From: Hemiscyllium ocellatum
Taxonomy: Eukaryota
Direction of reading: 5' to 3'
NCBI RefSeq assembly: GCF_020745735.1
Contig: NC_083409.1
Location: 15,657,873-15,721,872 of the forward strand
Length of the DNA stretch: 64,000 nucleotides
Positions 23,576-57,060 of the stretch are shown here, piece by piece. Each line of letters starts with the position of its first letter. Within the stretch, counting starts at the first letter, position 1. The translations under genes were made by a program, and so were the position numbers. The notes under the pieces are model-generated. The model ran no database searches. It saw only the letters and a program-made list of their open reading frames with translations, and was not told where the DNA came from.

Positions 23576-23904
23576 TCCGTGACAACTCTCAGCCCAAGCT
23601 GACCCTGCTGCCCCCCTCCCCTGAGCAGATTAATGCCAAGGACACTGCCACCCTGGTGTGCCTTGCCAATCACTTCTATCCCGATGAGCTGGAGGTGCAG
23701 TGGAAGAAAGACGGTGCAGTCATTTCGGACGGGGTTCAGACCAGCAACTACCTGCGAGCTTCGGACAGCACCTACAGTGTCAGCAGCCTGCTGACCCTCT
23801 CTGGGTCTGACTGGGAGTCCAACGCTCGCTTCTCCTGTGCCCTCACCCACGTGACCCTCCCCTCTCCCCTCAGCAAGAGCATCAGGAGATCAGAATGTGT
23901 GTAG
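23576..23904 (+). CDS. IGKC: Ig kappa-type constant exon, intact
   Basis: Acceptor ttttgtctttcag|tc, then RDNSQPKLTLLPPSPEQ...TATLVCLANHFYP...VQWKKDG...DSTYSVSSLLTL...FSCALTH...RSECV-stop. Both intradomain Cys, the Trp and the penultimate interchain Cys are present, and the phase matches the J donor. Confidence 0.97.
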
Positions 23905-24225
23905 AGTGTTGGAGACAGTCCACAGAGGAGACACAACTTTAAATAGAACAGGGCTGAGCTGGCAGGACAAAGGTCATTGTCAGCACTGAATTTCAACTCT
24001 CTTCCTTCTCAGGACTGCTCAGGGAACCTTCTGAGGTTTGGATGTTAAAGCAGATCATTGCGACAGTGTCGAGGGAGCTTTATGCTGTGTCAAACCCCAT
24101 GCTGTCCCTGTTCTGGGAGTGTTTGATGGGGACAGGGTTGACTTGTGATGCCAAGTAAAATCTCTTGAAGTTGCTGAAGACTGTCAGCTGTACAAAACAA
24201 TGTGAACCTCAGAATTCTCTGCTTC

Positions 24226-24231: not shown

Positions 24232-24814
24232 CCAGATCTCCTTCCTGCTCAGCTGTCAGTTCCAATTTAAGGTTTTGTCACTGTTTAAAGGGACAGGATT
24301 CTCATGTTATTGAGCAATTCTCCACAAGTGTTTTCCTTAAACACCATTGTGGCTGTGAATTTGAGCAGCTTCCTCTGTCTGGGCTGTTAATTACAGTTTT
24401 TTTTCTGTCAATGTGAATGTGGAAAAGGGAATAAAGGTGAAGATTCAGTCTCTGTCTGGTGTATGCTTTGGAAATAGATAACCTTCCCCGCCCCCCAGTT
24501 GATTGGCTGCATTTCAGCAGGTCATTGTCGAGATTGGCTGGTTGGCCTGTCAATCAATTACAATCATCAATCATTAATCATTTTCAAATGATCCCTTTGA
24601 TCAGGAATTTATGTAGGTTACAAGATTCCAAAAAGAACAGAAACCGAAAGCTGTTAGGACTCAATAAGTACAATCTGATGCATTCCCTCTTCACTCTGTT
24701 GGTCCAGGCCCATCTGATGGGATCGCACTGTGCAATCTCTGCTGCATGTTGGGTAGCTGCTGAAACAATCTTCGGCCAATCACTGACATTGTCAGCTGTG
24801 TCTCTCTGAGGTAA

Positions 24815-24940
24815 AAACAAGGACTGCAGATGCTGGAAACCAGATTCTAGATTAGAGTGGTACTGGAAAAGCACAGCAGGTCAGGCAGCATCTGAGGAGC
24901 AGGAAAATCGATGTTTCGGGCAAAGCCCTTCATCAGGAAT
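24815..24940 (-). mobile_element. Short Penelope-derived hammerhead element (an oppositely oriented partial copy lies at about 25535-25605)
   Basis: The minus strand reads attcctgatgaa-gggc-ttt-gccc-gaaacatcga, followed by the same body as 14331-14542. Confidence 0.75.
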
Positions 24941-26329
24941 AAAGCTCTATCTGGAATGTGTGCCTCTCTGAGTGTGAGTGTTTAACTTAATGCTGCTTGG
25001 AGGGGTCTCTCTCAGTGTGGATTTGTTACTCAGAGAGACACCTACAGGCAGCGTTCAGTAACGCACCCACATTCGGAGACACCTGTCTGCAGCATGGAGT
25101 GTGATCATGGTCCTCAGTGCAACCTGTCTCACAGAGTGAGTGTGTTACTCTGTGCTGTCTGTAGGTGTCTCTCTGAGGTATGTGTCTCCGAGTGATGGAT
25201 TGAGAATGGGCTTTGTGCTGGGGATTGAAGATTAGGCTTTAATCTTCTCAAATCATGAATGGAAAACAGTTCTGCTGATTCAGTCTGAGATGGCAGCTCA
25301 TTCAGATGGCCAAAGTTAAAAAACACACAACTCCAGGTGATAGTCAAACAGGTTTATTTCAAAGTAGAAGCGTTCAGAGCACTGTTTCTTCATCAGGTAG
25401 CTGGAGGGGCAGGATCATTGGACACAGAATTTATAGTAAATTCAGATGGCAGCTGAAAAAGGTGAATACTGAGAGTGTATTCTCAGTAAGGGAGGGATTT
25501 CAGAGGCAGTGGGCACTGTGCTCCCTCATGCAGAAATGTCGATTTTCCTGCTCCTCAGATGCTGCCTGACCTGCTGTGCTTTTCCAGCACTACTCTAATC
25601 TAGACTGTGCTCCCTAATGTGATGTCCAATTACAAGGGGACTTTCTGAATCCAGGGTCAATGGTGGCTGCCTGCCCAGCCAATGCTGGCTCCCCATAGTC
25701 ATATTTCAGTGGTTAATTAACCCAAAACAAGGTGCAGAAATATTACCTTCCAGGGAGGGGAGCTGTCTGAGGGAGGGAGGTTGAATTCTTGCAGCCCCAA
25801 GAGAGGTTGCGGTGGATTAATGACAGGTATGACCACCATGAAGGTGCCACTTTCTCTCCCCCTGCTACAGCTGTAATGACCCTCAGGTTAAAAGTGTGAC
25901 TGCTCTGGGATGATGACCACATTCCTGGGTGATGGAGGGAAGGCCAACCTCTCCCAAAGGCAGCACAGGCTGGATCGAAGGTGAAACAAGAGTAAGCATG
26001 GGGAGATTGAGGGTGACAGAAGGAGGGGGTTGGTTGGCAGGTTGTTATTCAGAGTCAGGTCCCAGAGTATCAGTCCTTCTGACATTCCCCTTTTTATCTG
26101 TCAGCCAGGGCTCCCTGATTGGACAAAGTTAACCGTCCCTGTCAGAGAACTCATATTTCATCAAAAAGAATAAAACATTTATTGAACAAGGAGCTCAAGA
26201 GCTAAATGACATTCAACAAAATGAATGGTTTGAAAGATTTCATTATGGACACTGCAAATAAGATTTGGTGAAGAACTTTTTCACTCAACAGGTGGTGGGA
26301 ATCCGGAATGGACTGTCATAAAATCCCTA

Positions 26330-37899: not shown

Positions 37900-38400
37900 A
37901 AAGTTTTCAATACCTTTGAAAGGTTATGCTTGTTATTACAACTCAACACTGTCCCCAACAAACAGTCTCCTGGACAGGGACAGAATAAGGTTAGATCCAG
38001 AGTAAAGCTCTTTCCATACTGTTCCCACCAAAGACACACAGGACAGGGACAGGATAAGAAACAGAATAAAGCTGTCTCCATACTGTCCTCGTCAAACACT
38101 TCAGGACAGGGACAGCACTGTTTGGGTACAGAGTGAAGCTCTCTCTACAGTGTCACAGTAACCTGCCTTAACCCCTGAACCTCAGAGTCTCCCAGAGGCC
38201 AGTCTCAAGAAGGAAGAGAGTTAAATTCAGTGCTGAAAATGACCTTTGTCCTGCCAGCTCAGCCCTGTTCTATTTAAAGTTGTGTCTCCTCTGTGGACTG
38301 TCTCACACACTCTACACACATTCTGATCTCCTGATGCTCTTGCTGAGGGGAGAGGGGAGTGTCACTTGGGTGAGGGCACAGGAGAAGTGAGCGTTGGACT
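37900..38400 (-). pseudogene. IGKC: Inverted remnant of the 3' end of a kappa C exon plus 3' flank
   Basis: The minus strand from 38400 reads agtccaacgctcacttctcctgtgccctcacccaagtg...gaatgtgtgtag (stop at 38312-38314), followed by the C 3' UTR. No acceptor and no 5' part of the exon. Confidence 0.92.
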
Positions 38401-38884
38401 GGCAGAAATATCAGTTTGAATATTTGTATCGGATACCTAACAAACCCGATGTTTTTTAAATTCCTTTTTGATTGTGGATATTGAAGCCCCCCACCCAGAG
38501 TACAGTCTGTGCCCTCACTACCCTCAGAGCTTCCTCCAAGTGCTGTTCAACATGGAGGAGAGACTGACTCATCAGCCGAGGGCGGACAGTACGTGGTCAT
38601 CAGCCAGAGGTTTCACAGAATCAGAGAATCATACAGTGTAGAAGAGGTCCCTCATCTGATCATGTCTGTCCCACCAAGGCAAAACTAAATCTACTCTCCA
38701 TCAGCTTTCCAGAACTGGATCCAAAGCATTGAATGTTCGGATATTTCAGGTGCCCATCCAGGTATATTTAAAAAGGTGTATTTTATGGGGATCTGCTCTG
38801 CTCTTCTCATAGTGTCATGGCATCTTCTACTGTCCCCTGAGAGGGCAGACATCAGAACATCCTACTTGAAAGATAATCTCTTAG

Positions 38885-39165
38885 CACTGAACCTCTGACA
38901 GTGTTGCACTCCCTCAATATTGACACACCAGCAGTGCAGCACTCCCTCAACATGAACTATCTGATAGTGTGGCACTCCCACGGTATTGACTTTCTGACAG
39001 TGTGGCCTTCCCTCAGTACTCACCCTCTGACAGTACTGCACTCCCTCAGTGCTGACCCATCATTAGTGCAACTCTCCATCAGTACTGACCCTCCAATAGT
39101 GTGGCACTCCCTCAGTGCTGACTTTCTGACAGTGCTGCATTCCCTCAGTGCTGCACTGCACTCTC
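38885..39165 (+). repeat. Imperfect tandem repeat of a roughly 40-bp unit (acagtgtggcactccctcagtactgacc...)
   Basis: About six or seven degenerate copies of the cactccctcagt unit. Confidence 0.8.
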
Positions 39166-41107
39166 AGTCTGGATAATTTGCTTCAGTGATAGAATCATGT
39201 AATGATGGAATTTGTACAATGTTGAAGCAGGCCATTCACGCCAATGAGTTCACACCAATCCTCCGAAGAGCATCCCACCCAGATCCAAACCACTGCACTA
39301 TCCCTGCAGACCTGCATTTCCCAATGGCTCATCCACCCAGTCTGCTACATTGTGAGTGTGAGGGGAGAGTGCTCCCCACTGAGACCAGTCTGACACCTCC
39401 CGGTTCAATGGCCTGCCTTGTTTCCCCATCCCAGCCCACACTTGGAGTAATGAGACCACCTGGGGAGGCTGGAGATGTTTTCCAGCCAGAGATAGTGCCT
39501 TCAGGAGAGAGATGGAGAGCAGATGTTAGGGGCAGGAAGCAGTGGGGTCTGTTGTCTTGAGGTGGGGTGTAGGACATTGAAGCAGGCGATGGCAGGTGCT
39601 GAACCCTTTCCCCGGAAGGAGTTTGTAAGTTGATCGGTGAAAGTGAGGGGTGGGGGGGGTAATCTCTTGTTGCCTGCTCAGTCACGTCTGAGAGACACAC
39701 AGACACATCAGACACACAGGAGGCAGCTTTCTGTGGATGTTCTCCTGGGGCAGGTCTCATCAATCATGGAGCTATGGTCAGTAAACAGTGTAAGCTGTTC
39801 GGCCCTGAAAGCCTGAGTCTGCAACTCAGCTCGGAAGGACGTCAGCTCATTCATCAAAACTGGTTCAGCCCCTCCGTAGCCTAGCTGGTCTGCCTGTGCC
39901 ATTTCACCACTCTCAGGTTTTCCTTTGTGCCACAGCTCATTCTCCTGAGGGACAGCTGTACTCAGGCCCAGCGGAGTGGACTCGATGGGCTGAATGGCCT
40001 TACTTCCACTCCTATGTCTTATGACCTTGTCACTCTGTCAGATCCTCTGCAATAAACTCATGGTTAACCATCGCCCTCTCCAGGATAGTTAGGGAAGGAC
40101 AATAAATAGCAGACACGTCAATGCTCTCCCCATCCCAGGAGTAATCAACATAACTGATGGACAATTCAAACAATCAAACTGATGGAAGGTGGTTCAATCA
40201 TTCCAGTGATTAAACTTCACCTGGTAATTCCTGTATTAAGTTCAAGGTGAAACTATCCTGGTCTCTGCTGAATTTAGATCAATTTTCTTTGTTAACTTAA
40301 TACATTTCCATCTTCATTCTTTCTCTCCAAACTGACCCTAATTTGAATGTTGCGAAAAACAAAACATTTTGTTGAAGCTTTTTGTCTTGCATGCATCAGG
40401 ACAATTTACAAGAAATGCCACAGCAAAGGGAAACAATATTTAAACTGGCGTGTTCATAGTGACAACACCTCAGCCTGTCAGCACTTTCCTCATATGCAAT
40501 ATCAATGCCATGTTTTTCTCCTTTGATTGGTACTTTTACAATTATCCTGAAGAGGGCAAAATGAAAAGCTGCCAAACACCGGGCATTTTTCAGGCCAGTT
40601 CAATATTCTCAAATGACTATTTGATCCTAATTCGCTCTTTTGCTTCAGACCTGTTCAAATTCCAAGAAGTAATTCTGTCCCATTTTGAATGGAGGACCCA
40701 GTTTACCAGCACTCACTAAATTCCAATCTCTGCATCAAAATATTTTTCCTGATCTCCTTCCTGTCCTTGGTGTATGACCAGAGAATGTGTCATTTTGTCT
40801 TTCTGTTTGTCAGTATTGACAGTAAATTTACATTTACTGTGTCAATTTCATAATGAAGTTTTGTTATCAGAATACCCTCCCTCCCCCCTCAAGATCCTGT
40901 TCTGGCATTTCCTTGTAACCTCGATCTCCTATCCCTGTCCATTCTGCATTGCCCCTCAATGAAGGCCATAACTATTCACCATATTCCAGATGTGACCTAA
41001 CCATTCTTCAGTACAGCTGTCCTGGCCACTCTCCCCTCCATCTCCTCACTCTCAATATTCATTCCAAAGTCCCATTGGCCTTTCCCATGTCTGTTCTTAT
41101 CAGGACA

Positions 41108-41428
41108 GGTGTCGAGTTGTGAGTCATCAGAGCTAGTGGAGAGATCATCGCTGGATCGTGATTGTGATTGGACATTGGAGGGTTGTTTGGTTGTGCTGAC
41201 CTGCTCTTGGTGGATCTTCATGCTGGCTTTGGCCTAATGCCAATTCAGGGACCAGCCAACCTTGGAGCCATGGCCTCAGCAGTCACTCACAGCCCTGGAC
41301 ATGAGGTTCAAAACACAGTCAGGGTGACTGTGAAGAAGGTGGAGGAGCACACACACTGGTTGATCGGAGCATGTTTGTGAAGAAAGTGGTGCTGTGGGTT
41401 TTGAGTGGTGTGTACTGCCTGTAGGATT
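41108..41428 (+). mobile_element. Tx1-clade LINE copy B, 5' portion (5' UTR and start of ORF1, ATG 41270)
   Basis: Homologous to 41490-41809 of copy A. Ends in GTACTGCCTGTAGGATT, which is repeated at 46737-46753 where copy B resumes. Confidence 0.85.
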
Positions 41429-41640
41429 CTGCTCGAGAGCTGCAGGTTCGACGCTGTGGAAGTGCGCTGGCGGGAGAAAAACCAAGGGGTTCGTGTTGCG
41501 AGTCGTTGGAGCTGCTGGAGACCATCACTGGATCGTGATTGGCTGCTGGAGGATCGTTTGGTTGTGCTGACCTGCTCTTGGTGGATCTTTATGCTGGCTT
41601 CGGCCTAACGCCAATTCAGGTATCAGCCAACCTCAGAGCT

Positions 41641-43113
41641 ATGGCCTCAGCAGCCGCTCGCAGCCCTGGCCAGGGCATTCGCAACACAGTCAGGGTGACT
41701 GTGAAGAAGGTGGAGGAGCACACACCAGTCGATCGGACGATGTTTGTGAAGAAGGTTTTGCTGGAGTGCTGTGGGTTTGCAGCAGCGGACGTGTACTGCC
41801 TGCAGGATTTCCCTGGGGCAGGTTACTTCGAGGTGACCTTCAGGAGCGTGAAGCATTGTGAGCAGCTCCTGAAGGTCTTCAAGGAGAAGGAAGGGGAACC
41901 TCTGTTCTCTATCTTGTCGGCGGTCCCATTGTGTGTGCTTCCTGCGCAGAGGAGTCGGGTTGTGACAATCCAAATGTACAACCCTTACGTCCCAGCGGCA
42001 GATGTTCTCACCTTCTTGAAGAGGTATGTCCAGGTGGAAGGCAAAAGCACTGATGTGGTCGATCCTTTCGGGATCTGGACCAGTAAGCGGCAGGTCAAGG
42101 TAACCCTGAGGGTCGATGGCAGCGGGAACATCCTCCACCCACCCTCCAGCTTCGCCATCGGAGGAAGCAGAGGTTACCTGACATACGCAGGGCAGCCGAA
42201 GGTGTGCCGAACCTGCGGGAGGTCAGGCCACATGGCGGCCGACCGTAAGGTGACTGTATGCCGAAATTGCAAACAGGAAGGCCACCTGACCAAGGATTTC
42301 AAGGAGGCCAAGAACTGTAACCTGTGCGGAGAGGCAGGCCACATGTACAAGGCCTGCCCAAGACGAGGAGCCGCCACCTACGCACAGATGGCCAGAGGTG
42401 GCAACACTAGCTGGGGACTGCCAAAGCCCAGCAGGGCACCACAAGATCGCACGGAAACGGTGCCTGGAGACACCCAGAAGGAAGAGCAGGCGGTAGCGGA
42501 GCAGACGGCAGACAGCGGGGAGGTACAGCAGCCGATCCAAGCTCCTTCAAGGCAGGCGGAGGAAATGGAAGAGGAGGAATCAAAGGAGGCAGATGACTGG
42601 ATCACAGTCAGAAATAGGAAGAGGAAACCTGTCTCGGGCCCCAAAGCCACCCAGAGAAGGGGGAAACGACACCTCCAAGTCGAGGATACAGGCAGCTCTT
42701 CTGATGGTGAGGACGGGCGCAAGAAGGGTCGCCACCAGAGGAAGAGACAGAGCGCCATGGGGAGAAAGGAGGGCAGCACCACCCAAGAAGGGAAAGACGA
42801 TCCCTCTGTGGGGATGGGTAAAGGCCTCCCCCTACCCGGTGAGAACCAAGAGGTGTCCACCGGCCCACAGCTCCAGGTAACTGGGAGCAGCGGTCCTGTG
42901 ACAGCCCCGCTGTCAGATGGAGAACTGGACGGTGCGGACCCTGGGCTTGACACAAAGACACCAGAGCGGGGAAATGGCTCCAGCGTGGAGCCGGACAGCT
43001 ACCTCAGCCCTGGGATGGTCCAGCAGTTTGCCGTCACCACGGGGATGCACACAGCTACCCCAGAGGAGCAAGACCAGCAGCAAATGGACACTATTAACCT
43101 TGTAAATTGTTAA
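41641..43113 (+). CDS. Tx1 ORF1 (gag-like, three zinc-knuckle repeats), open frame of 490 aa
   Basis: ATG at 41641. CRTCGRSGHMAADR, CRNCKQEGHLTKDF and CNLCGEAGHMYKAC knuckles, followed by a low-complexity charged tail. Confidence 0.9.
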   Translation: MASAAARSPGQGIRNTVRVTVKKVEEHTPVDRTMFVKKVLLECCGFAAADVYCLQDFPGAGYFEVTFRSVKHCEQLLKVFKEKEGEPLFSILSAVPLCVLPAQRSRVVTIQMYNPYVPAADVLTFLKRYVQVEGKSTDVVDPFGIWTSKRQVKVTLRVDGSGNILHPPSSFAIGGSRGYLTYAGQPKVCRTCGRSGHMAADRKVTVCRNCKQEGHLTKDFKEAKNCNLCGEAGHMYKACPRRGAATYAQMARGGNTSWGLPKPSRAPQDRTETVPGDTQKEEQAVAEQTADSGEVQQPIQAPSRQAEEMEEEESKEADDWITVRNRKRKPVSGPKATQRRGKRHLQVEDTGSSSDGEDGRKKGRHQRKRQSAMGRKEGSTTQEGKDDPSVGMGKGLPLPGENQEVSTGPQLQVTGSSGPVTAPLSDGELDGADPGLDTKTPERGNGSSVEPDSYLSPGMVQQFAVTTGMHTATPEEQDQQQMDTINLVNC

Positions 43114-43115
43114 AA

Positions 43116-46100
43116 ATGGGGCTTAAAGTTGCCAGCATCAATGTGCGTAGCATCAAATCGGCTACGCGATGTGTTTCAATGATGGCCTTCCTGGCCAGCG
43201 TTAAAGCCGACCTCCTGTTTCTGCAGGAGTGTGGGATACCGCACCTCAGCAGCTACAGGAGATGGTCGAGCTTGTGGGCCCATGGGCAGTCAGTTTGGTC
43301 GGGAGGCAACGATAGCCGCGCCTCCGGCCTGGGTATCCTGTTGTGAGGAAGCAACTTCACCATCTCCGAGGTTAAGGAGGTGGTGGGCGGGCGCCTCCTC
43401 GTCGCCGACGTTATGTACAGGAATGCTCCCCTGAGACTGATCAATGTGTACGCCCCAGTGGGTAAGAGTGAACGGTTGGCCGTCCTGCAGCAGCTTCCAC
43501 TGTTGCTGGCTACGTCCAGGCCGGTCATTCTGGCCGGAGACTTCAACTGTATCATTGATGCAGATGGACGATCCGGCGGGGGGGACAGTAAACTGGACGC
43601 CACGTCCAGAGCCCTGATGGACGCGGTTAAAAGATGCCAAGCTGCACGACGTCTTCAGCACCCCTGCAGACGGAGCGCAGCGTAGATACACCTGGTCACG
43701 GGCAGACGGGTCTATCCGCTCAAGGATAGATTACCTGTTTGTGTCCCGAATGATCTCGGTCAGATCCACCGACGTCAAGCCGGTGTTCTTCTCTGACCAC
43801 TGCCTCCTGCTGGCCGACTGTCACCTACAGGACGAGCAGCGGGCGGGTAAGGGAACGTGGAAGCTGAACACTAAGCTGTTGACCCCGGGAAACATTGAGG
43901 AGCTCAAGAGGGACTACGCAGGTTGGAGAACCGTGATGCCCCTCTTTGAGTCTCCAGCAGACTGGTGGGAAACAGTTAAAGGGAACATCAAGAGGTTCTT
44001 CATCCTCAAAGGTGTTCAGGAGGCGAGAGAGAGGCGGGGAAAACTGTCCCAACTCCAGGAAAGTATGCAGAACCTGCTCCTGCTGCAGACGATGGGGGTC
44101 GATGTCACAGAGGACCTCAAGGAGGTGAAGGGCCAGCAAGCCTCGCTCTTTGCCTCAGAGGCCTCCAAGATCATCTTCCGGTCCAGGGTCCGCTCGGTAG
44201 AGCAGGACGAGACGTGCTCACGTTTCTTCTTCCAGAAGGTGCACAAAGAGAGCTCTGTGCTCAGCAGCCTGAAGGAAGAAGACGGCTCGACAACGTCATC
44301 TCAGGCTGATGTCATGAGAATCAGCAAATCCTTCTATGCCAGTCTGTATGACGCGAAGCCGACCGACAGCGCGGCCTCCCAGTCGTTCCTGTCGTCTATC
44401 ACGGAGGTCTTAGACGACAGAACACGCGAGAGGCTGGACCAGCCGCTATCTCTGGACGAGCTGACCAAGGCCCTCGAGTCCTTCGAAAAGAATAAAACTC
44501 CCGGAAGCGATGGCTTACCGGTCGAGCTCTATTCTGCTCTGTGGGACTTGATTGGCCAGGACCTGCTGGAGGTGTATGTCAGTATGCTTCGGGCAGGTAC
44601 CATGAGCAAATCCATGAGGAAAGGCATCATCGCCCTCATCTATAAGCGGAAGGGGGAGAGGGAGGAACTCAAAAATTGGAGACCGATCACACTGTTGAAT
44701 GCAGATTACAAAATCCTGTCAAAGGTAATTGCCAACCGGGTCAGGTCTGCTCTGGGGTCGGTGATTCACCCTGACCAAACCTGTGCTGTGCCAGGCAGGA
44801 AGATCGCTGAGAGTCTCGCACTCCTCAGGGATACGATCGCCTACGTGCAGGACAGAGGGTTGGACGCCTGCCTGATCAGCCTGGACCAGGAGAAAGCCTT
44901 TGACAGGATATCACACAGGTATATGAGAGATGTTCTCTCCAAAATGGGCTTTGGGGAGGGAATCTGCAATTGGATCAGACTGCTCTACACCAACATCGTC
45001 AGTGCAGTCTCAATCAATGGGTGGGAATCAGATAGCTTCCCAGTCAGATCTGGAGTCAGACAGGGCTGCCCTCTCTCTCCTGCCTTGTTTGTGTGCTGCA
45101 TAGAGCCATTTGCCGAGTCCATCAGGAAGGATGCGAGCCTGAGAGGGGTGACTATTCCGGGCAGCGGGGGCCTGCAGGTTAAGGCCTCCCTGTACATGGA
45201 TGACGTCACCGTTTTCTGCTCGGATCCGCTGTCCGTGCGCAGACTCATGTGCATTTGTGACCAGTTCGAACGGGCCTCGGGGGCCAAGGTAAACCGAGGC
45301 AAGAGCGAGGCCATGCTCTTCGGCAACTGGGCCGACCAATCCTCGATCCCCTTCACCGTCAGGACCGACCACCTGAAGGTGCTGGGTATTTGGTTCGGGG
45401 GGGCTGGGGCGTGCGCCAAGTCTTGGGAGGAGCGTATCAGTAAAGTGAGGCAGAAACTGGGCAGATGGAGGCTACGGTCGCTCTCCATCACGGGAAAAAA
45501 CCTGGTCATCAGGTGTGAGGCACTGTCATTGCTGTTGTACGTGGCACAGGTCTGGCCTATTCCCAGAACCTGCGCCGCTGCAGTCGCCCGGGCCATCTTC
45601 CAGTTCATATGGAGTTCAAAGATGGACCGGGTCCGAAGGGACTCACTATACAAAGATCTGGGCAACGGGGGAAAAAATACACCCAATGCCACCCTCACCC
45701 TGATGGCCACCTTTGTGTGTGACTGCATCAAGCTGTGTGTGGATCCCCGGTACGCAAACACCAAGTGTCACTACGTACAGGTTCTACCTGTCCCCGGTGT
45801 TGCGAAGGATGGGCCTGGCCTCGCTGCCGCGGAACGCTCCGAGTAGTTGGACCGTTCCGTACCACCTGTCCTTCGTGGAGAAATTTCTGAAGAAAAACAC
45901 CTTTGACCACAAGTCCATCAGGAAGTGGTCAGCACGTAGCGTCCTCGAGACCCTTCGGGAAAAGGAGAGGGCGGATCCTGTTGAGTGGTTCCCTGAGCAG
46001 ACTGTCAAAGCAATTTGGCAGAATGCCTCATCGCCAGAACTTTCCAACAAGCACCAAGACATGGCTTGGCTGGTGGTGAGAAGGGCTCTACCTGTGAGAT

Positions 46101-46510
46101 CGTTTATGCACGCCCGGACTCTCAGCCGCACCGCACGCTGCCCTCGAAGTGGCTGCCGGGAGGACGAGACTGTCACACACCTCCTTCTGGAATGTGCCTA
46201 TGCAGAGGAAGTCTGGAGAGGAATGCAGTGGTATTTGTCGAGGTTCGTCCCGAGCAGCGCCGTGACGCGGGACTCTGTGCTCTACGGCCTGTTCCCCGAG
46301 ACGAACATCAACTGCGCCTGGAGGATCATCAACTCGGTGAAGGACGCTCTCTGGGCGGTCCGAAACCTGTTGATCTTCCAGCTGAAGGAGTTGACCCCGA
46401 CTGAGTGTTGCAGACTGGCACATTCCAAGGTCCAGGACTACGTGTTGAGGGACGCGCTGAAGCTTGGGGCAGCTGCCGCCAAGGCGCGGTGGGGAAAGAC
46501 CACTGTTTAA
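43116..46510 (+). pseudogene. Tx1 ORF2 (APE endonuclease, reverse transcriptase, C-terminal Cys/His motif), disrupted
   Basis: SINVRS, LFLQEC, GDFNC, SRIDYLF, SDHCLL; LDQEKAFD, QGCPLSPALF, YMDD; CPRSGC...HLLLEC. Nonsense TGA at 43344-43346 (CGG in copy B) and frameshifts near 43635 and 45779. Confidence 0.92.
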
Positions 46511-46736
46511 CACCTGCCTGTCTAAAGAAAAGCAGGGGGCCCATGCAGTCATTTGGGCTCTGCTGACACCTCAGCTCAATATATGAGTGAGAAATGCACT
46601 GATCTGTATGTAATAATGATAATTCGGAGCTGTGTATGTAAATGTGGAAATATGAATGGCATTACCTATTGTACAGTGTATCAAATTACTTTATTCATAA
46701 AATATGCATAGAATATATTTTTGAAATAAAAAAAAA

Positions 46737-49700
46737 GTACTGCCTGTAGGATTTCACTCGGGCTGGCTACTTTGATGTCACCTTCAGGAGTATGAAGCAT
46801 TGTGAGCAGCTCCTGAAGGTCTTCAAAGAGAAGGAAGGGGGAAAACCTCTGTTCTTCACCTTGTCGGTAGTCCCATTGTGTATGTTCTTTCTGCGCAGAG
46901 GAGTTGGGTTGTTCCAATCCAAATGTACAACCCTTACGTCCCAGCAGCAGATGTTCTCACCTTCTTGAAAAGATATGTCCAGGTTGAAGGAGAGAGCATC
47001 GATGTGGTTGATCCTTTTGGGATCTGGGCCAGCAAAGGACAGGTCAAGGTAACCCTGAGGGTCGATGCCAGCAGGAACATCCTCCACTCACCCTCCAGCT
47101 TCGCCATCGGAGGAAAGAGAGGTTACCTGACGTACACAGGGCAGCCGAAGGTGTGCCGAACCTGTGGGAGGTCAGGCCACATGGCGGCCGACTGTAAGGT
47201 GACCGTATGCCAAAACTGCAAGCAGGAAGGCCACCCGACCAAGGATTGTAAGGAGGCCAAGAACTGTAACCTGTGCGGAGAGGCGGGCCACATGTACAAG
47301 GCCTGCCCAAGACGAGGAGCCGCCACCTACGCACAGATGGCCGGAGGTGGCAACACGAATATGAGCCGTGGACCGACAAAGACCAGCAAGGCACCAGAAA
47401 ATAGCACGGAAACAGTGCCTGGAGGCACCCAGAAGGAAGGGCAGGCGGTAGCGGAGTAGACGGCAGACAGCGGGGAGGTGCAGCTGCCGATCCAAGCTCC
47501 TTTAAGGCAGATGGAGGAAATGGAAGAGGAGGAATCAAAGGAGGCAGAGGACTGGATCACAGTCAAAAACAGGAAGAGAAAACCTCTCGGGGGGCCCCAA
47601 AGCCACCCAGCGAAGGGGGAAGCAACACCTACAAGACGAAGACGTAGGCAGCTCTTCCGATGGTGAGGACGGGCACAAGAAGGGTCGTCATCAGAGGAAG
47701 AGACAGAGCGCCGTGCGGAGAAAGAAGGGCAGCACCGCCCAAGAAGGAAAGGACGATCCCTCCGAGGGGACGGGTAAAAGCCTCCCCCTACCCGGTGAGA
47801 ACCAGGAGATACCCACCGGCCCACAGCTCCAGGTATCTGGGAGCAGCGGTCCTATGACGGCCCTGCTGTCAGACGGAGAACTGGTCAGTGCGGACCACGG
47901 GCCCGACACGAAGACAACAGAGTGGGGTAATGGCCCCAGTGCGGAGCTGGACAGCCACCTCAGTCCTGGGAAGGTCCAACAGTTTGCCGCCACCACGGGG
48001 ATGCACACAGCTACCCCAGAGGGACAAGACCAGCAGCAAATGGACACCGGTAAACCTGTAAACTGTTAAAATGGGGTTTAAAATTGCCAGCATCAACGTG
48101 CGTAGCATCAAATCGGCTACGCGATGCGTTTCTACGCTGGCCTTCCTGGCCAGCGTCAAAGCCGACATCCTGTTTGTGCAGAAGTGTGGGATACCGCACC
48201 TCAGCAGTTACAGGAGGTGGTCAAGCATGTGGGCCCATGGGCCGTCAGTTTGGTCGGGGGCAACGATAACCGCTCCTCAGGCCTCGGGATCCTGTTGCGG
48301 GGAGGCAACTTCACCATCTCCGAGGTTAAGGAGGTTGTGGGCAGGCGTCTCCTCGTCACGGATGTTAAATACAGAAACGCTCCCGTAAGACTAATCAACG
48401 TGTACGCCCCAGTGGGTAAGAGTGAACGGTTGGCCGTCCTGCAGCAGCTTCCACTGTTACTGACTACGTCCAGGCCGGTCATTCTGGCCGGAGACTTCAA
48501 CTGTATCATTGATGCAGATGGACGATCCGGCGGGGGAGACAGTAAACTGGACGCCACGTCCAGAGCCCTGATGGACACGGTAAAAGATGAAAAGCTGCAC
48601 GATGTCTTCAGCACCCCTGCAGATGGAGCGCAGCGTAGATACACCAGGTCACGAGCAGACGGGTCTATCCGCTCAAGGATAGATTACCTGTTTGTGTCCC
48701 GAACGTTCTCGGTCAGAACCACCGACGTCAAACCGGTGTTCTTCTCTGAGCACTGCCTCCTGCTGGCTGACTGTCAACTGCAGGACGAGCAGCGGGCGGG
48801 CAAGGGAACGTGGAAGCTGAACACAAAACTGTTGACCCTGGGAAACATTGAGGAGCTGAAGAGGGACTATGCAGGTTGGAGAACTGCGAAGCCCCTCTTT
48901 GAGTCTCCAGCAGACTGGTGGGAAACAGTAAACGGGAACATCAAGAGGTTCTTCATCCTCAAAGGTGTTCAGGAGGCGAGACAGAGGCGGGGAAAACTGT
49001 CCCAACTCCAGAAAAGTATGCAGAACCTGCTCCTGCTGCAGACGTTGGGGGTCGATGTCACGGAGGACTTCAAGGAGGTGAAGGGCCAGCAAGTCTCGCT
49101 CTTTGCCTCGGAGGCCTCCAAGATCATCTTCCAGTCCAGGGTCCGCTCAGTGGAGCAGGATGAGATGTGCTCACGTTTCTTCTTCCAGAAGGTGCACAAA
49201 GACAGCTCCGTGCTCAGCAGCCTGAAGGAAGAAGATGGCTCGGTAACGTCATCTCAGGCTGATGTCATGAGGATCAGCTAATCCTTCAATGCCAGTCTGT
49301 ATGATGCGAAGCCAACCGACAGCGTGGCCTCCCAGTCGTTCCTGTCCTCTATCACAGAGGTCCTATATGACTGAACACGCGAGAGGCTGGACCAGCTGCT
49401 ATCTCTGGATGAGCTGACCAGGACCCTCGAGTCCTTCGAAAAGAATAAAACTCCCGGAAGCGATGGCTTACCGGTCGAGATCTATTCCGCTCTTTGGGAC
49501 TTTATTGGCTGGCACCTGTTGGAGGTGTATGTCAGTATGCTTCGGGCAGGTACCATGAGTGAATCCATGAGGAAAGGCTTCGTCACCCTCATCTACAAGC
49601 AGAAGGGGGAGAGGGACAAAATTAGAAATTGGAGACCGATCTCACTGTTAAACACAGACTGCAAAATCTTGTCAAAGGTCATCGCCAACCAGGTCAAGTC

Positions 49701-51700
49701 TGTTCTGGGAGCGGTGATCCACACTGACCAACCTGTGCTGTACTGGGCAGGAAAATCTCTGAGAGTCTCGCACTCCTCAGGGATACGATCGCCTACGTGC
49801 AGGACAGGGGGGTGGACACCTGCCTCATCAGCCTGGACTAGGAGAAAGCTTTTGACCGGATATCGCGTACATATATGATGGATGTCCTCTCCAAAATGGG
49901 CTTTGGGAGGGAATCGGAAATTGGATCAGACTGCTCTACACCAACATTGTCAGTGCAGTCTCAATCAATGGGTAGGAATCAAATAGCTTCCCAGTTAGAT
50001 CTGGAGTCAGGCAGGGCTGCCCACTCTCTCCTGCCTTGTTTGTGTGTTGCATAGAGCCATTTGCCGAGTCCCTCAGGAAGGATGCGAGCCTGAGAGGGGT
50101 GACTATTCCTGGCAGCGGGGGCCTACAGGTTAAGGCCTCCCTGTGCATGGATGACGGCGCCGTTTTCTGCTCAGATCCGCTGTCCGTGCACAGACTCCTG
50201 TGCATCTGTGACCAGTTTGAACAGGCCTCGGGGGCCAAGATAAACCGAGGCAAGAGCGAGGCCATGCTCTTCGGGAACTGGACTGACCAATCCTATATCC
50301 CCTTCACCATCAGGACTGACCACCTGAAGGTGCTGGGTATTTGGTTCGGGGGGGCTGGGTACCGTGCGCTAAGACCTGGGATGAGTGGATCAGGAAGATG
50401 AGACAGAAACTAGGCAGATGGGAGCAATGGTCGCTCTCCATCGTGGGGAAAAACCTGGTCATCAGGTGTGAGGTACTCTCAGTATTGTTATATTTGGCAC
50501 AGGACTGGCCTATCCCCAGAACCTGTGCTGCCGCAGTCACCCAGGCCATCTTCCACTTCATGTGGAGATCAAAGATGGACCGGGTCCGAAGAGACACAAT
50601 GTACAAAGACCAGTGCAATGGGGGAAAAAACACTCCCAATGCCACCCTCATCCTGATGGTCACCTTTGTGTGTGGCTGCATCAAGCTGTGCATGGATCCC
50701 CAGTACGCAAACACCAAGTGTCACTACGTACTGAGGTTCTACCTGTCCCCGGTGTTGTGAAGGATGGGCCTGGCCTCGCTATCGCGGAATGCTCCGAGTA
50801 GTTGGACCGTTCCATACCACCTGTCCTTCGTGGAGAAAGTTTTGAAGAAAAACACCTTTGACCACAAGTCCATCAGGCAGTTGTCAGCACGTAGCGTCCT
50901 TGAGATCCTTCGGGAAAAGGAGAGGGCAGAACCTGTTGAGTGGTTCCCTGAGCAGACTGTCAAAGCCATTTGGCAAAATGCCTCATCGCCAGAACTTTCC
51001 AACAAGCACCAAGACATGGCTTGGCTGGTGGTGTGAAGGGCTCTACCTGTGAGATCATTTATGCACGCCCGGACTCTCTGCTACACCGCACGCTGCCCTC
51101 GAAGCGGCTGTGGGGGGGCACGAGACTGTCACACACCTCCTTCTGGAATGTGCCTATGCAGAGGAAGTCTGGAGAGGAATACAGTGGTATTTGTCGAGGT
51201 TTGTCCTGAGCAGCGCCGTGACGCGGGACTCCGTGCTCTACGGCCTGTTCCCCGGGATGCACACAGAGACGAACATCAACTGTGCCTGGAGGATCATCAA
51301 CTCGGTGAAGGACGCTCTCTGGGTGGTCCGAAACCTGTTGATCTTCCAGCTGAAGGAGTTGACCCCGACTGAGTATTGCAGACTGGCACATTCCAAGGTC
51401 CAGGACAATGTGCTGAGGGACGCGCTGAAGCTTGGGGCAGCTGCTGCCAAGGCGCGGTGGGGAAAGACCACCGTTTAACATCTGCCTGTCTGAAGAACAT
51501 GCAGTCATTTGGGCTCTGCTGACGCCTCAGCTCAATATATGGGCATATGAGCGAGAAATGCACAGACCTGTATACAATAACGATAATTCTGAGCAGTGTA
51601 TGTAAATGTTGTCATATGTATGGCATTACCAACTGTACAGTTCATCAAATTATTTTATGAATATTTTACAAATAAAGTATAATTTTGAAATAAAAAAAAA
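46737..51700 (+). mobile_element. Tx1-clade LINE copy B, remainder (rest of ORF1, ORF2, 3' UTR, poly(A)), more decayed than A
   Basis: Colinear with copy A from the YCLQDF position onward. Several stops and frameshifts. Poly(A) at 51692-51700. Confidence 0.92.
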
Positions 51701-53437
51701 GATATGTACTGCCTGCAGGATTTTCCTGGTGCAAGCTACTTTGATGTGACCTTCAGAAGTGTGAAGCAGTGCGAGCAGCTCCTGAAGGTCTTCAAGGAGA
51801 AGGAGGGGGAGCCACTATTCTCCATCTTGTCGGCGATCCCATTGTGTGTGCTTCCTGCACAGCGGAGTCGGGTTGTTACAATCCATATGTACAACCCCTA
51901 TGTTCCAGCAGCTGATGTCCTGACCTTCCTGGGAAGGTAGATCCAAGTTGAGCGAGAAGCCACCGATGTGATTGACCCCTTTGGGATCCTTATTCCTGAT
52001 GAAGGGCTCATGCTCGAAACGTCGAATTCTCTGTTCCTGAGATGCTGCCTGGCCTGCTGTGCTTTGACCAGCAACACATTTGCAGCTGTGATCTCCAGCA
52101 TCTGCAGACCTCATTTTTTACCCTTTGGGATCTGGACTAGTAAGCGGCAGGTCAGGGTAACTCTGAGGGTCGATGGTAATGGGGAAATTCTCCACCCTCC
52201 CTCGAGCTTCGCAATTGGAGGGAGCAGAGGCTACCTGACATATGCAGGGCAGTCGAAAGTGTGCCGATCCTGTGGGAAGGCGGGACACATGGTGGCGGAT
52301 TGTAAGGTGACCATCTGCAGGAATTGCAAACAGGAGGCTCACCTGACTAAGGACTGTCAGGAAGCAAAGAGCTGCAACCTGTGCGGAGAGGCAGGCCACA
52401 TGTACAAGACCTGCCCAAGACGGGGGAGGCGGGGGCCCCACTTACGCACAGATGGCTGGAGGTAGCAATGTGAGTCGTGGATTCCCAAAGACCAGCAAGG
52501 TCCACCCAGACAGCAGGGAAACGGAGACTGGTGGTACCCAGAAGAAGAACAGGCTGGAGTGGAGGAGGCAGCAGCCAGTGGAGAGACACAGCAGCTGATC
52601 CTAGCTCGAGCTGGGCAGATGGAAGCAATGGAGGAGGAGGTAATTGAGAAGGCAGAGGAGTGGATACCTGTTAAAAACAGGAAGAGGAAATCCTGCCAGG
52701 CCCCCAAAGCCTCCCAGCAAAGGGGGAATAGACAGCTGCACGAGGGAGAGACGGCCAGCTCTTCGAATGGGGAAGACGAGCGCAAAGAAGGTCATCACCA
52801 CCAGAAGAAGAGACAAAGCGCCATAGATAAAGAGGAGGGCATTTCCTCCCAACCAGGAAACAACGGGCCCCTGAAGTCCACCCTCCACCCAGTGAGAACC
52901 AGGAGGTACCCACTGCCCAACAACTCCAGGTAACTGAAAGCTGTGATCCTCTGACAGAACTGGATGGTGCGGACCCTTGCCTTGGCTCAATGACACCAGA
53001 GCGGGTAAATGACCCCAGTGAGGAGCTGGATAGCTACCTCAGCCCAACGAAGGTCCAGCAGTTCGTGCTCACCAGGGGGATGCAGACAGCTACCCCAGAG
53101 ACAGGACAGTCAAATGGACAATGGTAATCCCATAAACTGGGGATTAAAGAAGGTTCCTTTGCTATCGTATAACAGGGCACCCACTCACTAGGTGGGTTCC
53201 GCTGAAGCCACAGCTAAATAATAAGAGACTGGTTGGTTAATAAACGGACTGTAAATATGATAACTGTAAATTCGATTAATTCAATCTGTTCTTTGTAATG
53301 TTAAGACATGCAATGTATATATCTATGAACAACATGACAGGTACCTAAGATTTATTGCAATGTATGAACGACATGACAAATTGTACAAGTACCAAAGATT
53401 TATTTTTATGAATAAAGTATATTTTGAAATAAAAAAA
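51701..53437 (+). mobile_element. Tx1-clade copy C: 3' part of ORF1 joined directly to a 3' UTR and poly(A), no ORF2
   Basis: ORF1 homology from gatatgtactgcctgcagg to about 53145 with all three CCHC knuckles. A Tx1-type 3' UTR then follows immediately, ending gaataaagtatattttgaaataaaaaaa. Confidence 0.8.
51989..52120 (+). mobile_element. 132-bp Penelope-derived element carrying a minimal hammerhead ribozyme motif (51992-52027)
   Basis: attc-CTGATGA-a-gggc-tcat-gctc-GAAAC-GTC-gaat. 12-bp duplication CCCTTTGGGATC at 51977-51988 and 52121-52132, interrupting Tx1 ORF1. Confidence 0.85.
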
Positions 53438-53598
53438 GCAACTACCTGCGAGCTTCGGACAGCACCTACAGTGTCAGCAGCCTGCTGACCCTCTCTGGGT
53501 CTGACTGAGAGTCCAACGCTCACTTCTCCTGTGCCCTCACCCACGTGACCCTCCCCTCTCCCCTCAGCAAGAGCATCAGGAGATCAGAATGTGTGTAG
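53438..53598 (+). pseudogene. IGKC: 3' half of a second kappa C exon, 5' half missing, with a nonsense mutation
   Basis: 159/161 nt identical to 23744-23904. TGG->TGA at 53506-53508. Begins directly after a Tx1 poly(A). 3' flank homology continues to about 54150. Confidence 0.95.
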
Positions 53599-55739
53599 AG
53601 TGTTTGAGACAGTCCACAGAGGAGACACAACTTTAAATAGAACAGGGCTGAGCTGGCAGGACAAAGGTCATTGTCAGCACTGAATTTCACCTCTCTTCCA
53701 TTTCAGGCCTGGCTCAGAGACACTTCTGAGGTTCAAGGGTTATGGCAGGTCATTGCGATCATCAAAAGGAAGCTTTACTCCGTATCAAACCCCATGCTGA
53801 CCCTGTTCTGGGAGTGTTTGACTGGGGCAGTGATGTCCTGTGATACCAAGTCAAACCTCTCAAAAATGCTGAAGACTGTCAGCTGTACAAAAATAATGTG
53901 AACTTCAGAAGTCTCTACTTCAGTAAACCAGATCTCCTTGCTGCTCAGCTGCCAGTTCCCATTTAAGATTTTGTCATTGTTTAAAGGGACAGGATTCTCA
54001 TGTTATTGAGAAAATCTCCACAAGTGTTTTCCTCAAGCTCCATTGTGGCTGTGAATTTGAGCGGCTTCCTCTGTCTGGGCTGTTAATTGCTGACTGTTTT
54101 CTGTTGTTGTCAATCTGGAAAAGGGAATAAAGATGAAGAAGATTCAGTCTCTGTCTCTGTGTGCTTTGGGAATGGCCCGAGCTGAAGCCTCGGGAAAGGG
54201 TGTGTGAAGCGTCAACCTCCAACTTCAAGACCTGGAGAAAGAGGGGGAGCATCGAGGGGGCAATGGGGTCCCCGGAGGAGGAGGGCAATGCTACCATTGT
54301 GTCCAGAAGGGGCACTTTCAGCAGGAATGCAGGGTATCAAGGAAATCTTTCCCAATAAATGGAGGAAAGAAGGAAGGCAGGAGGGGACAATGGGGAACAC
54401 AATAATCTGATGGAAATTCCCCATCGATGCTTGCCCATCCCTTAGGCACAGCAAGATCCCAAACCAAGAAATTCAAATCAACTGTTTGGGAGCCAGAGCC
54501 ACTGGGAACCCTGTATTGATGAATATGACCGACAGGATCTTGTTACTCAGAATCACAATTCCACAGGGTTCGGGAAATAAATATTCCATAAATTAAACCT
54601 GGGTTTTCTTTCCTCCTCCAATGAGATGGAATTGCCCCGTGTGTCCCTGGAGTCAGATTGAGAATGTTCAGTCTGGGAGTCACAGCTGGGGAGGGAAATC
54701 AATGATAAACTGGTTCCACTTTCTGCTGTCATATTCTGTAGCCCCTGGGACATCTCAGTGAGGATCATCCAGGGCTCAGGGTGGATTCCAGAGCAGCTCA
54801 TTGTCCTGACTGTTGTGTTCCTCAGTTCACACGTGGCTCCAGCAATCTCACTCCATGGCTCTAGTATCAATGGGAACCCATGGGGCTGAAATCTTATCCA
54901 AACAGACCCTCACACAGCAGGGACGCTGCTGGGGGCTCAGAAACCCCTTGGATTCAGTCCCAGATTCCACGGTGGCTCTTTCATTCAGACACAGCATTAG
55001 CACACTGACACCACATTCAGAGGGCAATCCTGAATGGGGGCAAGTTTGGTTCTTGATTTCATGTGGGGAAATGGGGGGTGGGTGTGAAATGTCCTCCCTG
55101 AAACTGTGGGGTGTGGGGGGAGGAGGGGGGGATACTTTATAATGAATAGAAACTGATGTCAGAATAAAGATTGGTTTTGATGGGAGTGAGGAATATCTCA
55201 GTGATCTGTCTCCAGAATCCACAGACTATACACATCCTTCTGTCAGTCACTGAAGTCTGAGAGAGCAGCTTCTCAACATCCAATAATTCTCCACCTTTCC
55301 GAGAAAAGGTGAAATATTCTCTGCCTCAGACATTCCCTGGGACAGGACATTTTCGAAATGTTGTTGCTCTCTGCTTTGCAATTGCTAAACTGGTAATAAT
55401 TACTTTTTGCTCACAATTTGCTCTCTCGAGTTTGATCCATTTGCCTTTCTTGCTTTGCTTCTTTTGACTTCATTCTGTGGGTAAGTTCCATCAAAACCCA
55501 ACTTCCTCACACTCATCCTGGCCCCTGAAATGATTAGAGACAAAAAAAATCCTGCAAACTCTGGAATTCAAGGTTGACAAGCAGGAGGCTGGGAGAACAC
55601 AGCAAGCCAGGCAACATCAGGAGGTGGAGAAGTCAATGTTTTGACTGTAACCCTTCTTCAGGACTGGGGAGGGTGTTGGGGGAGCTGCAGATAAAGGAGG
55701 TGGGAGAGATGAATCCTGATGCATCTCTCCCATCGACGA

Positions 55740-55920
55740 ATAAGAGACTGGATGGTTAATAAAGGGAACTGTAAATACGATAACTGTAAATTCGATTAAC
55801 TCAATCTGTTCTTCGTAATGTTAAGACATGCAATGTATATATCTATGAACGACATGACAAATTGTACAGGTACCAAAGATTTATTTCTATGAATAAAGTA
55901 TATTTTGAAATTTAAAAAAA
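55740..55920 (+). mobile_element. 5'-truncated Tx1 3' UTR and poly(A), same subfamily as copy C
   Basis: Near-identical to 53222-53437, apart from a short internal duplication in the latter. Confidence 0.85.
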
Positions 55921-55924
55921 ATTC

Positions 55925-57060
55925 GATGTTCAGGTGCATAAATCCCTGAAGGTTGCCACCCAGGTTGATAGGATTGTCAAGAAGGGACATGGTGGGCTGG
56001 TGTTTATTGACAGGGGGATTATGTTTTGGAGCCACAATATCATGTTTCAGCTGTACAAGACATTGGTCAGTCCACACCTGGAGTATTGCATACAGTTCTG
56101 GTCATCACATGAGAGGAAGGATGTGGAAGGTTTGGAAAAAGTTCAGAGGAGGTTTGCAAGGATGTTGCGTGGTATGGAGGGAAGGTCTTACGAGGAAAGT
56201 CTGAGGGAACTGAGGCTGTTTTCATTGGAGAGATGAAGGCTGATTTTCCCCTTACCAAAACGCAAAGCTTTATATTTATCTAAATAAACCCCATCTCTCA
56301 CTCCTCGTCCATTGGTCATCTGATCAAGCGTTGAACATATATTATAAACCTGAGCATCTATAAGGCATTTCTCTGACCACACCTGGGGGAATTGTCTCTC
56401 CCTATTTGAGGAAGGATGTGGTGACACTGGAGGCTGTTCAGCGTATGTTCCCCAGACTGATTCCAGGTATGAAAGGGCTGTCCTACGAGGAGTAGGTAAA
56501 GAGCTTGGGTAAAAAATGAGGTCTGCAGATGCTGGAGATCACAGCTGAAAATGTGATGAAGGGCTTATGCCCGAAACGTCGAATTTTCTATTCCTTGGAT
56601 GCTGCCTAACCTGCTGTGCTTGAACCAGGTAAAGAGCTTGGGCTTGTACTCACTGGAGTTCAAAAGAAGGAGGAGGGATCTGATTGAGGGAGAGAAAATG
56701 TGAAAGGAGATTGATAAGGTGGACGTTGAATCGATGCTCCCCTTTCTGGGACAGTCTCGAACAAGAGGTCATCAATATAGAGTGAGAGGAGCTGGGTTCA
56801 AATCTAAGATAAGGAGAAACTACATCTCCCAGAGGGTTGTGAATCTGTGGAACTCAATGCTCCAGATTGCAGTGGAGGCAGAATCAATCAACAGGTTCAA
56901 GAACGATGTGTTTCTGATGAAAAGTGAGATAAAGAGCGATGGGGAGCAGACCAGGAGAGAGGAGCTGAGACCAGGATAAGATCAGACATGGTCATGTTAA
57001 ATGGCAGAGCGGGCTCGAAGGGCTGAATTGCCTCCTCCCGCTCCTAATTCCGATGTTGAA
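55925..57060 (+). mobile_element. CR1 LINE 3' fragments
   Basis: LYKTLVSPHLEYCIQFWSS, TRGHQYRVRG and SQRVVNLWN motifs. Confidence 0.8.
56510..56626 (+). mobile_element. 117-bp Penelope-derived hammerhead element with an inverted 5' segment
   Basis: tgatgaa-gggc-ttat-gccc-gaaacgtcga core. 16-bp duplication AGGTAAAGAGCTTGGG at 56494-56509 and 56627-56642. Confidence 0.8.

Follow-up and report, generated by a model that had tools for sequence, protein, structure and literature searches.

A window of 64,000 nucleotides (64 kb) from the genome of the shark Hemiscyllium ocellatum (contig NC_083409.1, positions 15,657,873 to 15,721,872 of the forward strand) contains a three-deep nest of long interspersed nuclear elements (LINEs) of the Tx1 type. 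Its members are referred to here as copy A (innermost), copy B and copy C (outermost). One and the same site in the first open reading frame (ORF1) of this family was used at least twice in the window, with the new copy lying sense-in-sense in its host, and tails of the same kind joined to this ORF1 site were found in two other species. A preference of the element's endonuclease for the site is rather likely to be real; strict family-wide specificity is unproven. An earlier reading made from the letters of the window alone (the sequence-only reading) had proposed that the family targets its own ORF1 or that of a sister family. The repeated use of the site and its junctions in two other species bear this out in part, and the host of B does belong to a sister family, as that reading allowed; the status of the site as the main target does not follow from these data.

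The window positions and letters quoted in the sequence-only reading were all re-read at the three junctions and found to be as given. Copy A is bracketed by an exact 17-bp duplication, GTACTGCCTGTAGGATT (41412–41428 and 46737–46753), the two copies of which are still identical to each other. The corresponding site inside A's own ORF1, at 41793–41809, carries the TGCAGG allele, with C where GTACTGCCTGTAGGATT, with TGTAGG, has T. The exact duplication around an element complete in length shows that A is a true insertion at ORF1 positions 365–381. The tail of A consists of TTTTGAAAT and nine A ending at 46736; the tail of B likewise has TTTTGAAAT and nine A, ending at 51700, and then continues as GATATGTACTGCCTGCAGGATT. 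According to the re-read letters and to a BLAST of the window against itself, B's A-run adjoins the ORF1 of C at A-equivalent position 359, 5 nt upstream of the position used by A. A, B and C have one common orientation. In an element of 5.3 kb, the chance of a second junction falling within 5 nt of the first is about 11/5308 = 0.002, uncorrected for the many windows read, about 1500 in this genome.

Tails of this kind occur four times in the window: two stand at the ORF1 site, one at a look-alike with 11 of 17 matches and one at an unrelated sequence. The orientation is fixed and the target position is narrow, the nicks lying at 0, −5 and −3/−4 relative to GTACTG. Unlike the targets of L1, all four nick sites lack T-rich sequence.

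Evidence from outside the assembly came from Logan contigs of four runs, two from the same species (X5 and X2) and two from other species (X10 and X13), placed on 41412–46760 at 80% likeness. The rows read were the best-supported ones listed, with 2379 joints, 314 between-letter rows and 9121 loose ends lying beyond them, so that each junction is a single example giving no proportions, and contig depths are not convertible to copy numbers. Contigs of both same-species samples cross both ends of 41412–46760; the junctions of A are thus not peculiar to this assembly. The X13 contigs contain a joint from 46736 to 41791 with AT between, reading as an A-run followed by ATGTGTACTGCC, with a depth of 209.6, several times that of the long divergent contigs of the same run. 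In a second X13 joint, ATGTGTA follows the A-run and leads into a 5′-truncated copy that begins near 45953; this resembles another insertion added on top of the first at one site. The X10 contig runs via the A-run to 46746 (GTACTGCCTG) and then into more than 250 nt of unlike sequence; this junction is a separate event, with A's nick position and a different continuation. Runs X5, X2 and X13 contain the family in great abundance, X10 only sparsely. Depth over the 3′ part of the second frame (ORF2) is 10–30 times that over ORF1; across the final 160 nt it falls tenfold, with a large loose end at 46503. This pattern indicates that the 3′ untranslated region (UTR) of the A/B type marks a minority subfamily among many Tx1 lineages with a common ORF2. 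The features of the nest are listed in Table 1.

Table 1. Features of the LINE nest and its surroundings, and alignments of copy A to the window.
Feature	Window position	Strand	Content or basis
Segment U: host-copy 5′ UTR with the opening ~50 codons of ORF1	41108–41411	+	Homology with A
Left 17-bp duplication copy, GTACTGCCTGTAGGATT	41412–41428	+	Translates to YCL*D in the frame of the host ORF1
Copy A, complete in length, 5308 bp	41429–46736	+	Collinear with full-length Tx1-like ORF2 proteins
A, 5′ UTR	41429–41640	+	
A, ORF1, open	41641–43113	+	Two ZCCHC3-type RNA-binding domains and CCHC knuckles
Unoccupied site GTACTGCCTGCAGGATT in A's ORF1	41793–41809	+	YCLQD, residues 52–56, first RNA-binding domain
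A, ORF2	about 43116–46510	+	Endonuclease, reverse transcriptase, zf-RVT; broken frames; 3′ UTR after
A, 9-A run	46728–46736	+	
Right 17-bp duplication copy	46737–46753	+	Sequence reading
Copy B, ORF1 position 382 to 9-A run (51692–51700)	46754–51700	+	90% to A
Copy C, ORF1-only derivative	51701–53437	+	ORF1 parts 51701–51988 and 52122–53100
Immunoglobulin light-chain C exon, 3′ half	53437–53606	+	Homology with paralogous exon 23577–23905
Lone 5′-truncated C-type tail	55739–55919	+	A-run adjoins TTCGATGTTCAGG
A 63–381	41112–41428		80%, BLAST of A against the window
A 365–5308	46737–51700		90%, BLAST of A against the window
A 364–647	51705–51988		83%, BLAST of A against the window
A 636–1637	52122–53100		76%, BLAST of A against the window

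Several observations weigh against a preference for the ORF1 site. The X13 junction is only two transitions away from the B–C junction, and the two may be related rather than independent; a tail-to-ORF1 joint is also missing from the 15 best-supported joints listed. For B itself no duplication can be demonstrated, and the sequence on the 5′ side of the whole nest is unlike the immunoglobulin exon found at its 3′ end, so that the history of B and C is partly reconstructed. The junction of the lone 181-bp tail at 55739–55919 matches the motif at 7 of 17 positions and is unlike it. The nick wanders over 5–6 nt, which is looser than the precision of R1- or TRAS-type elements. Finally, a sister subfamily lands in a satellite and not in ORF1. 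This copy (L001; Chiloscyllium punctatum BEZZ01000727.1, 7612–11601) is a 5′-truncated Tx1 element, 92% identical to A in ORF2 and with a different 3′ UTR; it sits in a 41-bp satellite array and has a duplication of about 10 bp (GRCTGRGAAG). It may represent a satellite-targeting sister lineage and, as a single case, fits the idea that every Tx1 lineage has a separate target. A further locus, L002, is 75% alike and has its tail in another repeat; neither L001 nor L002 is of the A/B tail type. By the criterion of Kojima, a family is target-specific when more than 20% of copy flanks are one kind of sequence (PMC4494074); the shark family is known here from four window tails and single contig examples. 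As a separate observation, the lone tail at 55739–55919 sits in an apparent reverse-transcriptase region of a different LINE.

The family was identified from the proteins of copy A. Pfam finds RBD_ZCCHC3_1st (1.4e-17), RBD_ZCCHC3_2nd (2e-26) and zf-CCHC (5e-9) in ORF1, and RVT_1 (1e-37) and zf-RVT (2.4e-11) in ORF2; the match of Exo_endo_phos to A's endonuclease piece is weak (3e-4) and below the cut-off. Read in three frames, the ORF2 region of A is collinear with relatives of about 1100–1150 residues, from residue ~1–8 to residue ~1100–1143, and the full-length relatives carry PF03372, PF00078 and PF13966. A has both the ORF1 architecture of Tx1 elements (RRM-like RNA-binding domains, then CCHC knuckles) and their ORF2 architecture (an APE-type endonuclease at the N-terminus, then a reverse transcriptase and, at the C-terminus, a zinc-binding region). 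The top named relatives are the ‘transposon TX1 149 kDa protein’ of Danio and pol-like proteins of Takifugu and Danio; these named Tx1 and pol-like proteins score 557–583 bits, with 39–40% identity over 95–96% of the query, while human L1 ORF2p scores 252 bits. The assignment to Tx1-type LINEs, made also in the sequence-only reading, is accepted with the reservation that it comes from the domain order and the scores of named relatives and not from a tree.

Copy A had been called full-length. It is complete in length with an open ORF1; its ORF2, however, is interrupted by a stop at 43344 and two frameshifts, near 43627 and near 45778. Among the Logan contigs of the family, C is the majority letter at 43344 and the 43627 and 45778 frameshifts are absent from some, which makes these defects private to A. 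B, 90% identical to A, has many broken frames. The protein collection has no record of A's own ORF1; it contains 14 ORF1 relatives, the closest being 78% identical and from Chiloscyllium punctatum. Two runs of one sample, X9 and X15, which are probable RNA runs, contain 0.52 and 0.44 of A's sampled words, and from these shares family sequence is probably present in transcripts. A search of JGI metagenome contigs with the conserved tail word gave nine loci, all chance matches and none related to the family.

The outermost member of the nest, C, is of a different kind. It leaves homology with A after A-equivalent position 1637, near the end of ORF1, and is without ORF2; its own 3′ UTR of about 336 nt (53101–53430) is followed by TTTTGAAAT with 6–7 A at 53431–53437, the last A being ambiguous with the target sequence. 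The C tail is common with those of A and B over the last ~35 nt only. C is an ORF1-only derivative of the Tx1 family, with the terminal ATTTTGAAAT(A)n common to A and B, and not a LINE that has lost its 3′ part. An unrelated 133-bp repeat interrupts the ORF1 of C at 51989–52121; more copies of this repeat lie in the window at 24813–24942, 25533–25604, 14326–14532 and 56554–56621.

The A-run of C adjoins the 3′ half of an immunoglobulin (Ig) light-chain C exon. Homology with the intact paralogous exon at 23577–23905 begins exactly at 23743, which equals window position 53437. Judged by this homology, it was an Ig light-chain C exon in which C, or a composite of segment U, B and C, landed. The A-run is followed by AGCAACTACCTGCGAG, in which 11 of the 17 letters of the ORF1 motif recur when the motif is placed 2 nt past the junction; 0.7% of random window positions are as good (offsets 0–8), which gives p of about 0.007. 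The 5′ half of the exon is absent from the whole 64-kb window, and the DNA upstream of 41108 belongs to another repeat, the 5′ flank of the nest being unlike the Ig exon; the 5′ side of the nest has therefore undergone deletion or rearrangement.

Other observations concern the Ig sequences and the upstream region. The surviving 3′ half of the exon has TGA where the paralogue has TGG (gactgagag versus gactgggag). An inverted partial copy (86–87%) of the 3′ part of the C exon and its downstream flank lies at 38083–38400 on the minus strand, about 2.7 kb upstream of the nest, and hints at rearrangement of the Ig cluster. A tandem repeat with 33/66-bp units (~8 copies, 67–68% matches) is located at 38886–39153, also upstream. 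An Rfam scan of 38000–57000 for RNA-gene heads or ribozymes found none.

The observed-to-expected CpG ratio is 0.63 in A, 0.58 in B (46737–51700), 0.37 in C and 0.18–0.19 in the flanks, which is the order that nesting predicts. Segment U, upstream of A, was taken in the sequence-only reading for the 5′ part of B. Its homology supports a place in a host copy (U aligns to A positions ~55–364 at about 84%), but it looks older than B. U keeps 2 of 13 CpGs of A and B's ORF1 keeps 31 of 54 (Fisher p = 0.011), while C, with 18 of 53, does not differ from U. Outside CpGs, U has diverged from A by 12.9% and B by 7.7% (p = 0.010), and several indels occur within the 300 nt of U, B having 15 gap runs in about 5000 nt. 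Going by these comparisons, U may be older than the rest of B and possibly is the missing 5′ half of C. A faster-evolving 5′ UTR could account for part of the difference, and the age tests are not proof.

Two histories of B and C can be compared. In the first, U would be the 5′ half of C, and the complementary DNA (cDNA) of B would have been joined through homology to the host copy, in or close to the target site. This would give an old 5′ part, a new body, an A-run and the displaced old 3′ part of the host. Two 22-nt stretches that differ by three transitions, the last of U and the first of C's 3′ part, would then be the two copies of B's duplication. In the second, U would be B's own 5′ part, and a later deletion would have taken the exon half, the 5′ half of C and the first ~55 nt of B. 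The event count is equal in the two histories, and the second leaves the age difference of U unexplained; from the sequence comparisons, the joining of B's cDNA to C by homology is given about an even chance among the histories considered. No duplication for the U–B–C block was found between 41090–41111 and the sequence from 53437 onward. The sequence-only reading had also stated that each insertion kills the previous copy; this may fail for B if U is the 5′ half of C, as the result would be a rebuilt full-length hybrid and not a C cut into two parts lying apart.

The gaps in this history leave room for an account in which the window contains only one independent hit. The B–C joint would then have been made elsewhere or at the RNA level, by read-through of a nested donor or by a template switch from a 5′-shortened C RNA to the tail of B RNA, and the block would have arrived in the Ig exon whole, the second junction close to A's site being in part an inherited one. 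Such an account, which we regard as unlikely, fits the finding of no 5′ half of C and no duplication of B upstream of 41108, the 5′ flank unlike the Ig exon, and the single junction of A-run and Ig exon that serves the whole block. Read-through, however, presupposes that B had already inserted at this ORF1 site, which shifts the event without doing away with it, and template switching gives no reason for a C RNA to end 5 nt from the site of A. The block is also not visibly multi-copy: the 100-nt stretch over the B–C junction has six sampled words, of which two occur in two runs, both of the window's own species, a result too weak to date the junction.

A second account invokes coincidence, with an abundant LINE of no preference, two junctions 5 nt apart by luck, and a window picked for that reason. 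The summed depths do show the family to be abundant, and one of the window tails is at an unrelated site. The account is improbable, given a second-junction chance of about 0.002, one orientation at all junctions, and contigs of two other species showing the same tail and then the same ORF1 letters. The Ig-exon site, moreover, resembles the motif (p about 0.007), and the nick sites are not T-rich.

Entry guided by homology is a further possibility of similarly low standing. Here the RNA or nascent cDNA of the element would pair with family copies and breaks or nicks in the paired region would be used, the ORF1 position being favoured structurally and not by an enzyme reading the letters. Each of the two hosts belongs to the family, homology perhaps resolved B's 5′ junction, and the wandering of the nick over 5–6 nt is as expected on this account. 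Homology alone, however, would spread junctions along the element and not cluster them; the Ig C exon was used although it has no homology beyond the motif, and the X10 letters past GTACTGCCTG are unlike ORF1.

Mis-joining of similar repeats during assembly is very improbable: repeats 90% alike do adjoin here, but the window has no N letters, the copies are 10–24% apart, enough for reads to separate them, the junctions have an exact duplication and clean A-runs, and the ends of the A stretch are bridged by contigs of two samples. Unequal recombination was considered as well and rejected, as it would not set a complete element, from first base to A-run, between exact 17-bp repeats.

Under the preferred reading, in which the endonuclease favours the ORF1 site, the autonomous copies of ~5.3 kb (A and B) and the ORF1-only derivative C would make up one Tx1-clade family. 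Its ORF2 endonuclease would prefer a site of ~12–17 bp, ...ACGT/GTACTGCCTGCAGGATT, in the part of the family's own ORF1 that encodes the first RNA-binding domain. The bottom strand would be nicked at GTACTG or up to 5 nt before it, in a window of about 6 nt, and the short A-run would prime reverse transcription at the nick with no need for a T-rich primer. In the canonical case, a top-strand cut 17 bp downstream would give the 17-bp duplication; the 5′ end would be joined as a complete copy, as for A, or possibly by homology with the host copy, as for B. New copies would share the orientation of the host copy because the site is asymmetric, and nests would build up because every new copy brings a fresh site. 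B would have entered C, and A the rebuilt site at the U/B boundary. The preference would not be absolute, a degenerate motif having been used in the Ig C exon and some tails standing at unrelated sequence. The anatomy of the junctions, the duplication, the common orientation, the age order and the further junctions of other species are observed; recognition of the letters by the endonuclease, the size of the share of insertions that goes to the ORF1 site and the homology step are inferred.

Tx1 elements are typically target-specific, and their targets include other transposons (PMC4494074). Tx1L inserts into Tx1D, a piggyBac-type element, in Xenopus, Keno into U2, and Kibi and Koshi into microsatellites; Tx1-Mar inserts into Mariner-N4_AMi at two positions with fixed orientation, Tx1-9_AMi into Harbinger about 300 bp from the end, and Tx1-8_Crp and Tx1-4_AMi into long-terminal-repeat elements (PMC4494074). 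Non-autonomous partners share Tx1 targets, and the junctions show duplications and target truncations (Kojima 2015, PMC4494074). The shark family resembles these elements in its protein architecture, in a defined place in a repeated element, in fixed orientation and in a partner that shares its tail. It differs from them in its target, which is a coding segment of its own ORF1, and that of its ORF1-only derivative, and not a foreign transposon, RNA gene or microsatellite.

LINEs that nest in themselves are known outside the Tx1 clade. Cnl1 inserts into itself in tandem orientation (PMC9942834); like the shark element, it lands in its own copies, keeps their orientation and forms nests. Cnl1, however, is fungal and confined to subtelomeres, whereas the shark nest lies in a vertebrate Ig light-chain cluster and its element is of the Tx1 type with a defined ORF1 site. 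Zepp of Chlorella and Coccomyxa forms nested LINE clusters, one per chromosome (PMC3446292), and shares with the shark case the nesting of copies of a single LINE family. The clusters of Zepp have chromosome-specific locations (telomere or centromere), a link not seen for the shark nest, and a precise shared ORF1 site is not what the Zepp source describes (PMC3446292). The sequence-only reading had treated the habit as undescribed in shark Tx1; the lack of precedent holds, as far as found, for Tx1 elements and for sharks, and does not extend to LINEs that nest in themselves, of which Cnl1 and Zepp are examples. A literature search that did not cover Repbase reports found neither a Tx1 element nor a shark LINE with its own ORF1 as target. 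The novelty is the own-ORF1 target; site-specific Tx1 elements and self-nesting LINEs were already known.

The possible 5′ junction of B has a parallel in R2 and R1, the 5′ junctions of which are formed via homology with the upstream target, according to Eickbush et al. 2000 and Fujimoto et al. 2004 as cited in PMC4494074. If U is the 5′ half of C, the likeness would be that the cDNA pairs with homologous target upstream of the nick. The difference is that the homology of R2 and R1 comes from co-transcribed ribosomal DNA, while that of the shark element would come from its own 5′ part, as inferred from age tests only. As a general mechanism, self-targeting might serve as a repair device against 5′ truncation, an idea that is doubtful at present. 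A cDNA whose copying reached no further than ORF1 would pair with host sequence lying upstream of the nick, and the host copy would supply the missing part. The outcome would be a full-length hybrid, in which the old 5′ UTR with its promoter leads into the new body, with the host's displaced 3′ part after it. U (41108–41411) would then be the 5′ half of C, and B would at no time have possessed a separate 5′ end at this locus. Being hit would in this way turn a dead copy, or one with ORF1 only, into a complete element again.

The use of the Ig C exon indicates that look-alikes of the motif, as off-target sites, can cost the host a gene segment. If the ORF1 preference holds across the genome, the defined 17-bp site and the matching APE-type endonuclease would be available for the study of how such enzymes read DNA, and the protein sequence of the element (YCLQD, in the RNA-binding domain) would be in direct conflict with the recognition sequence of its endonuclease. 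In that case this would also be a vertebrate Tx1 family for which the safe landing site lies within its own coding sequence and within that of the ORF1-only parasite. Damage to host genes would be limited, nested arrays would be expected, and the birth of each copy would be coupled to the inactivation, and possibly the rebuilding, of an older one.

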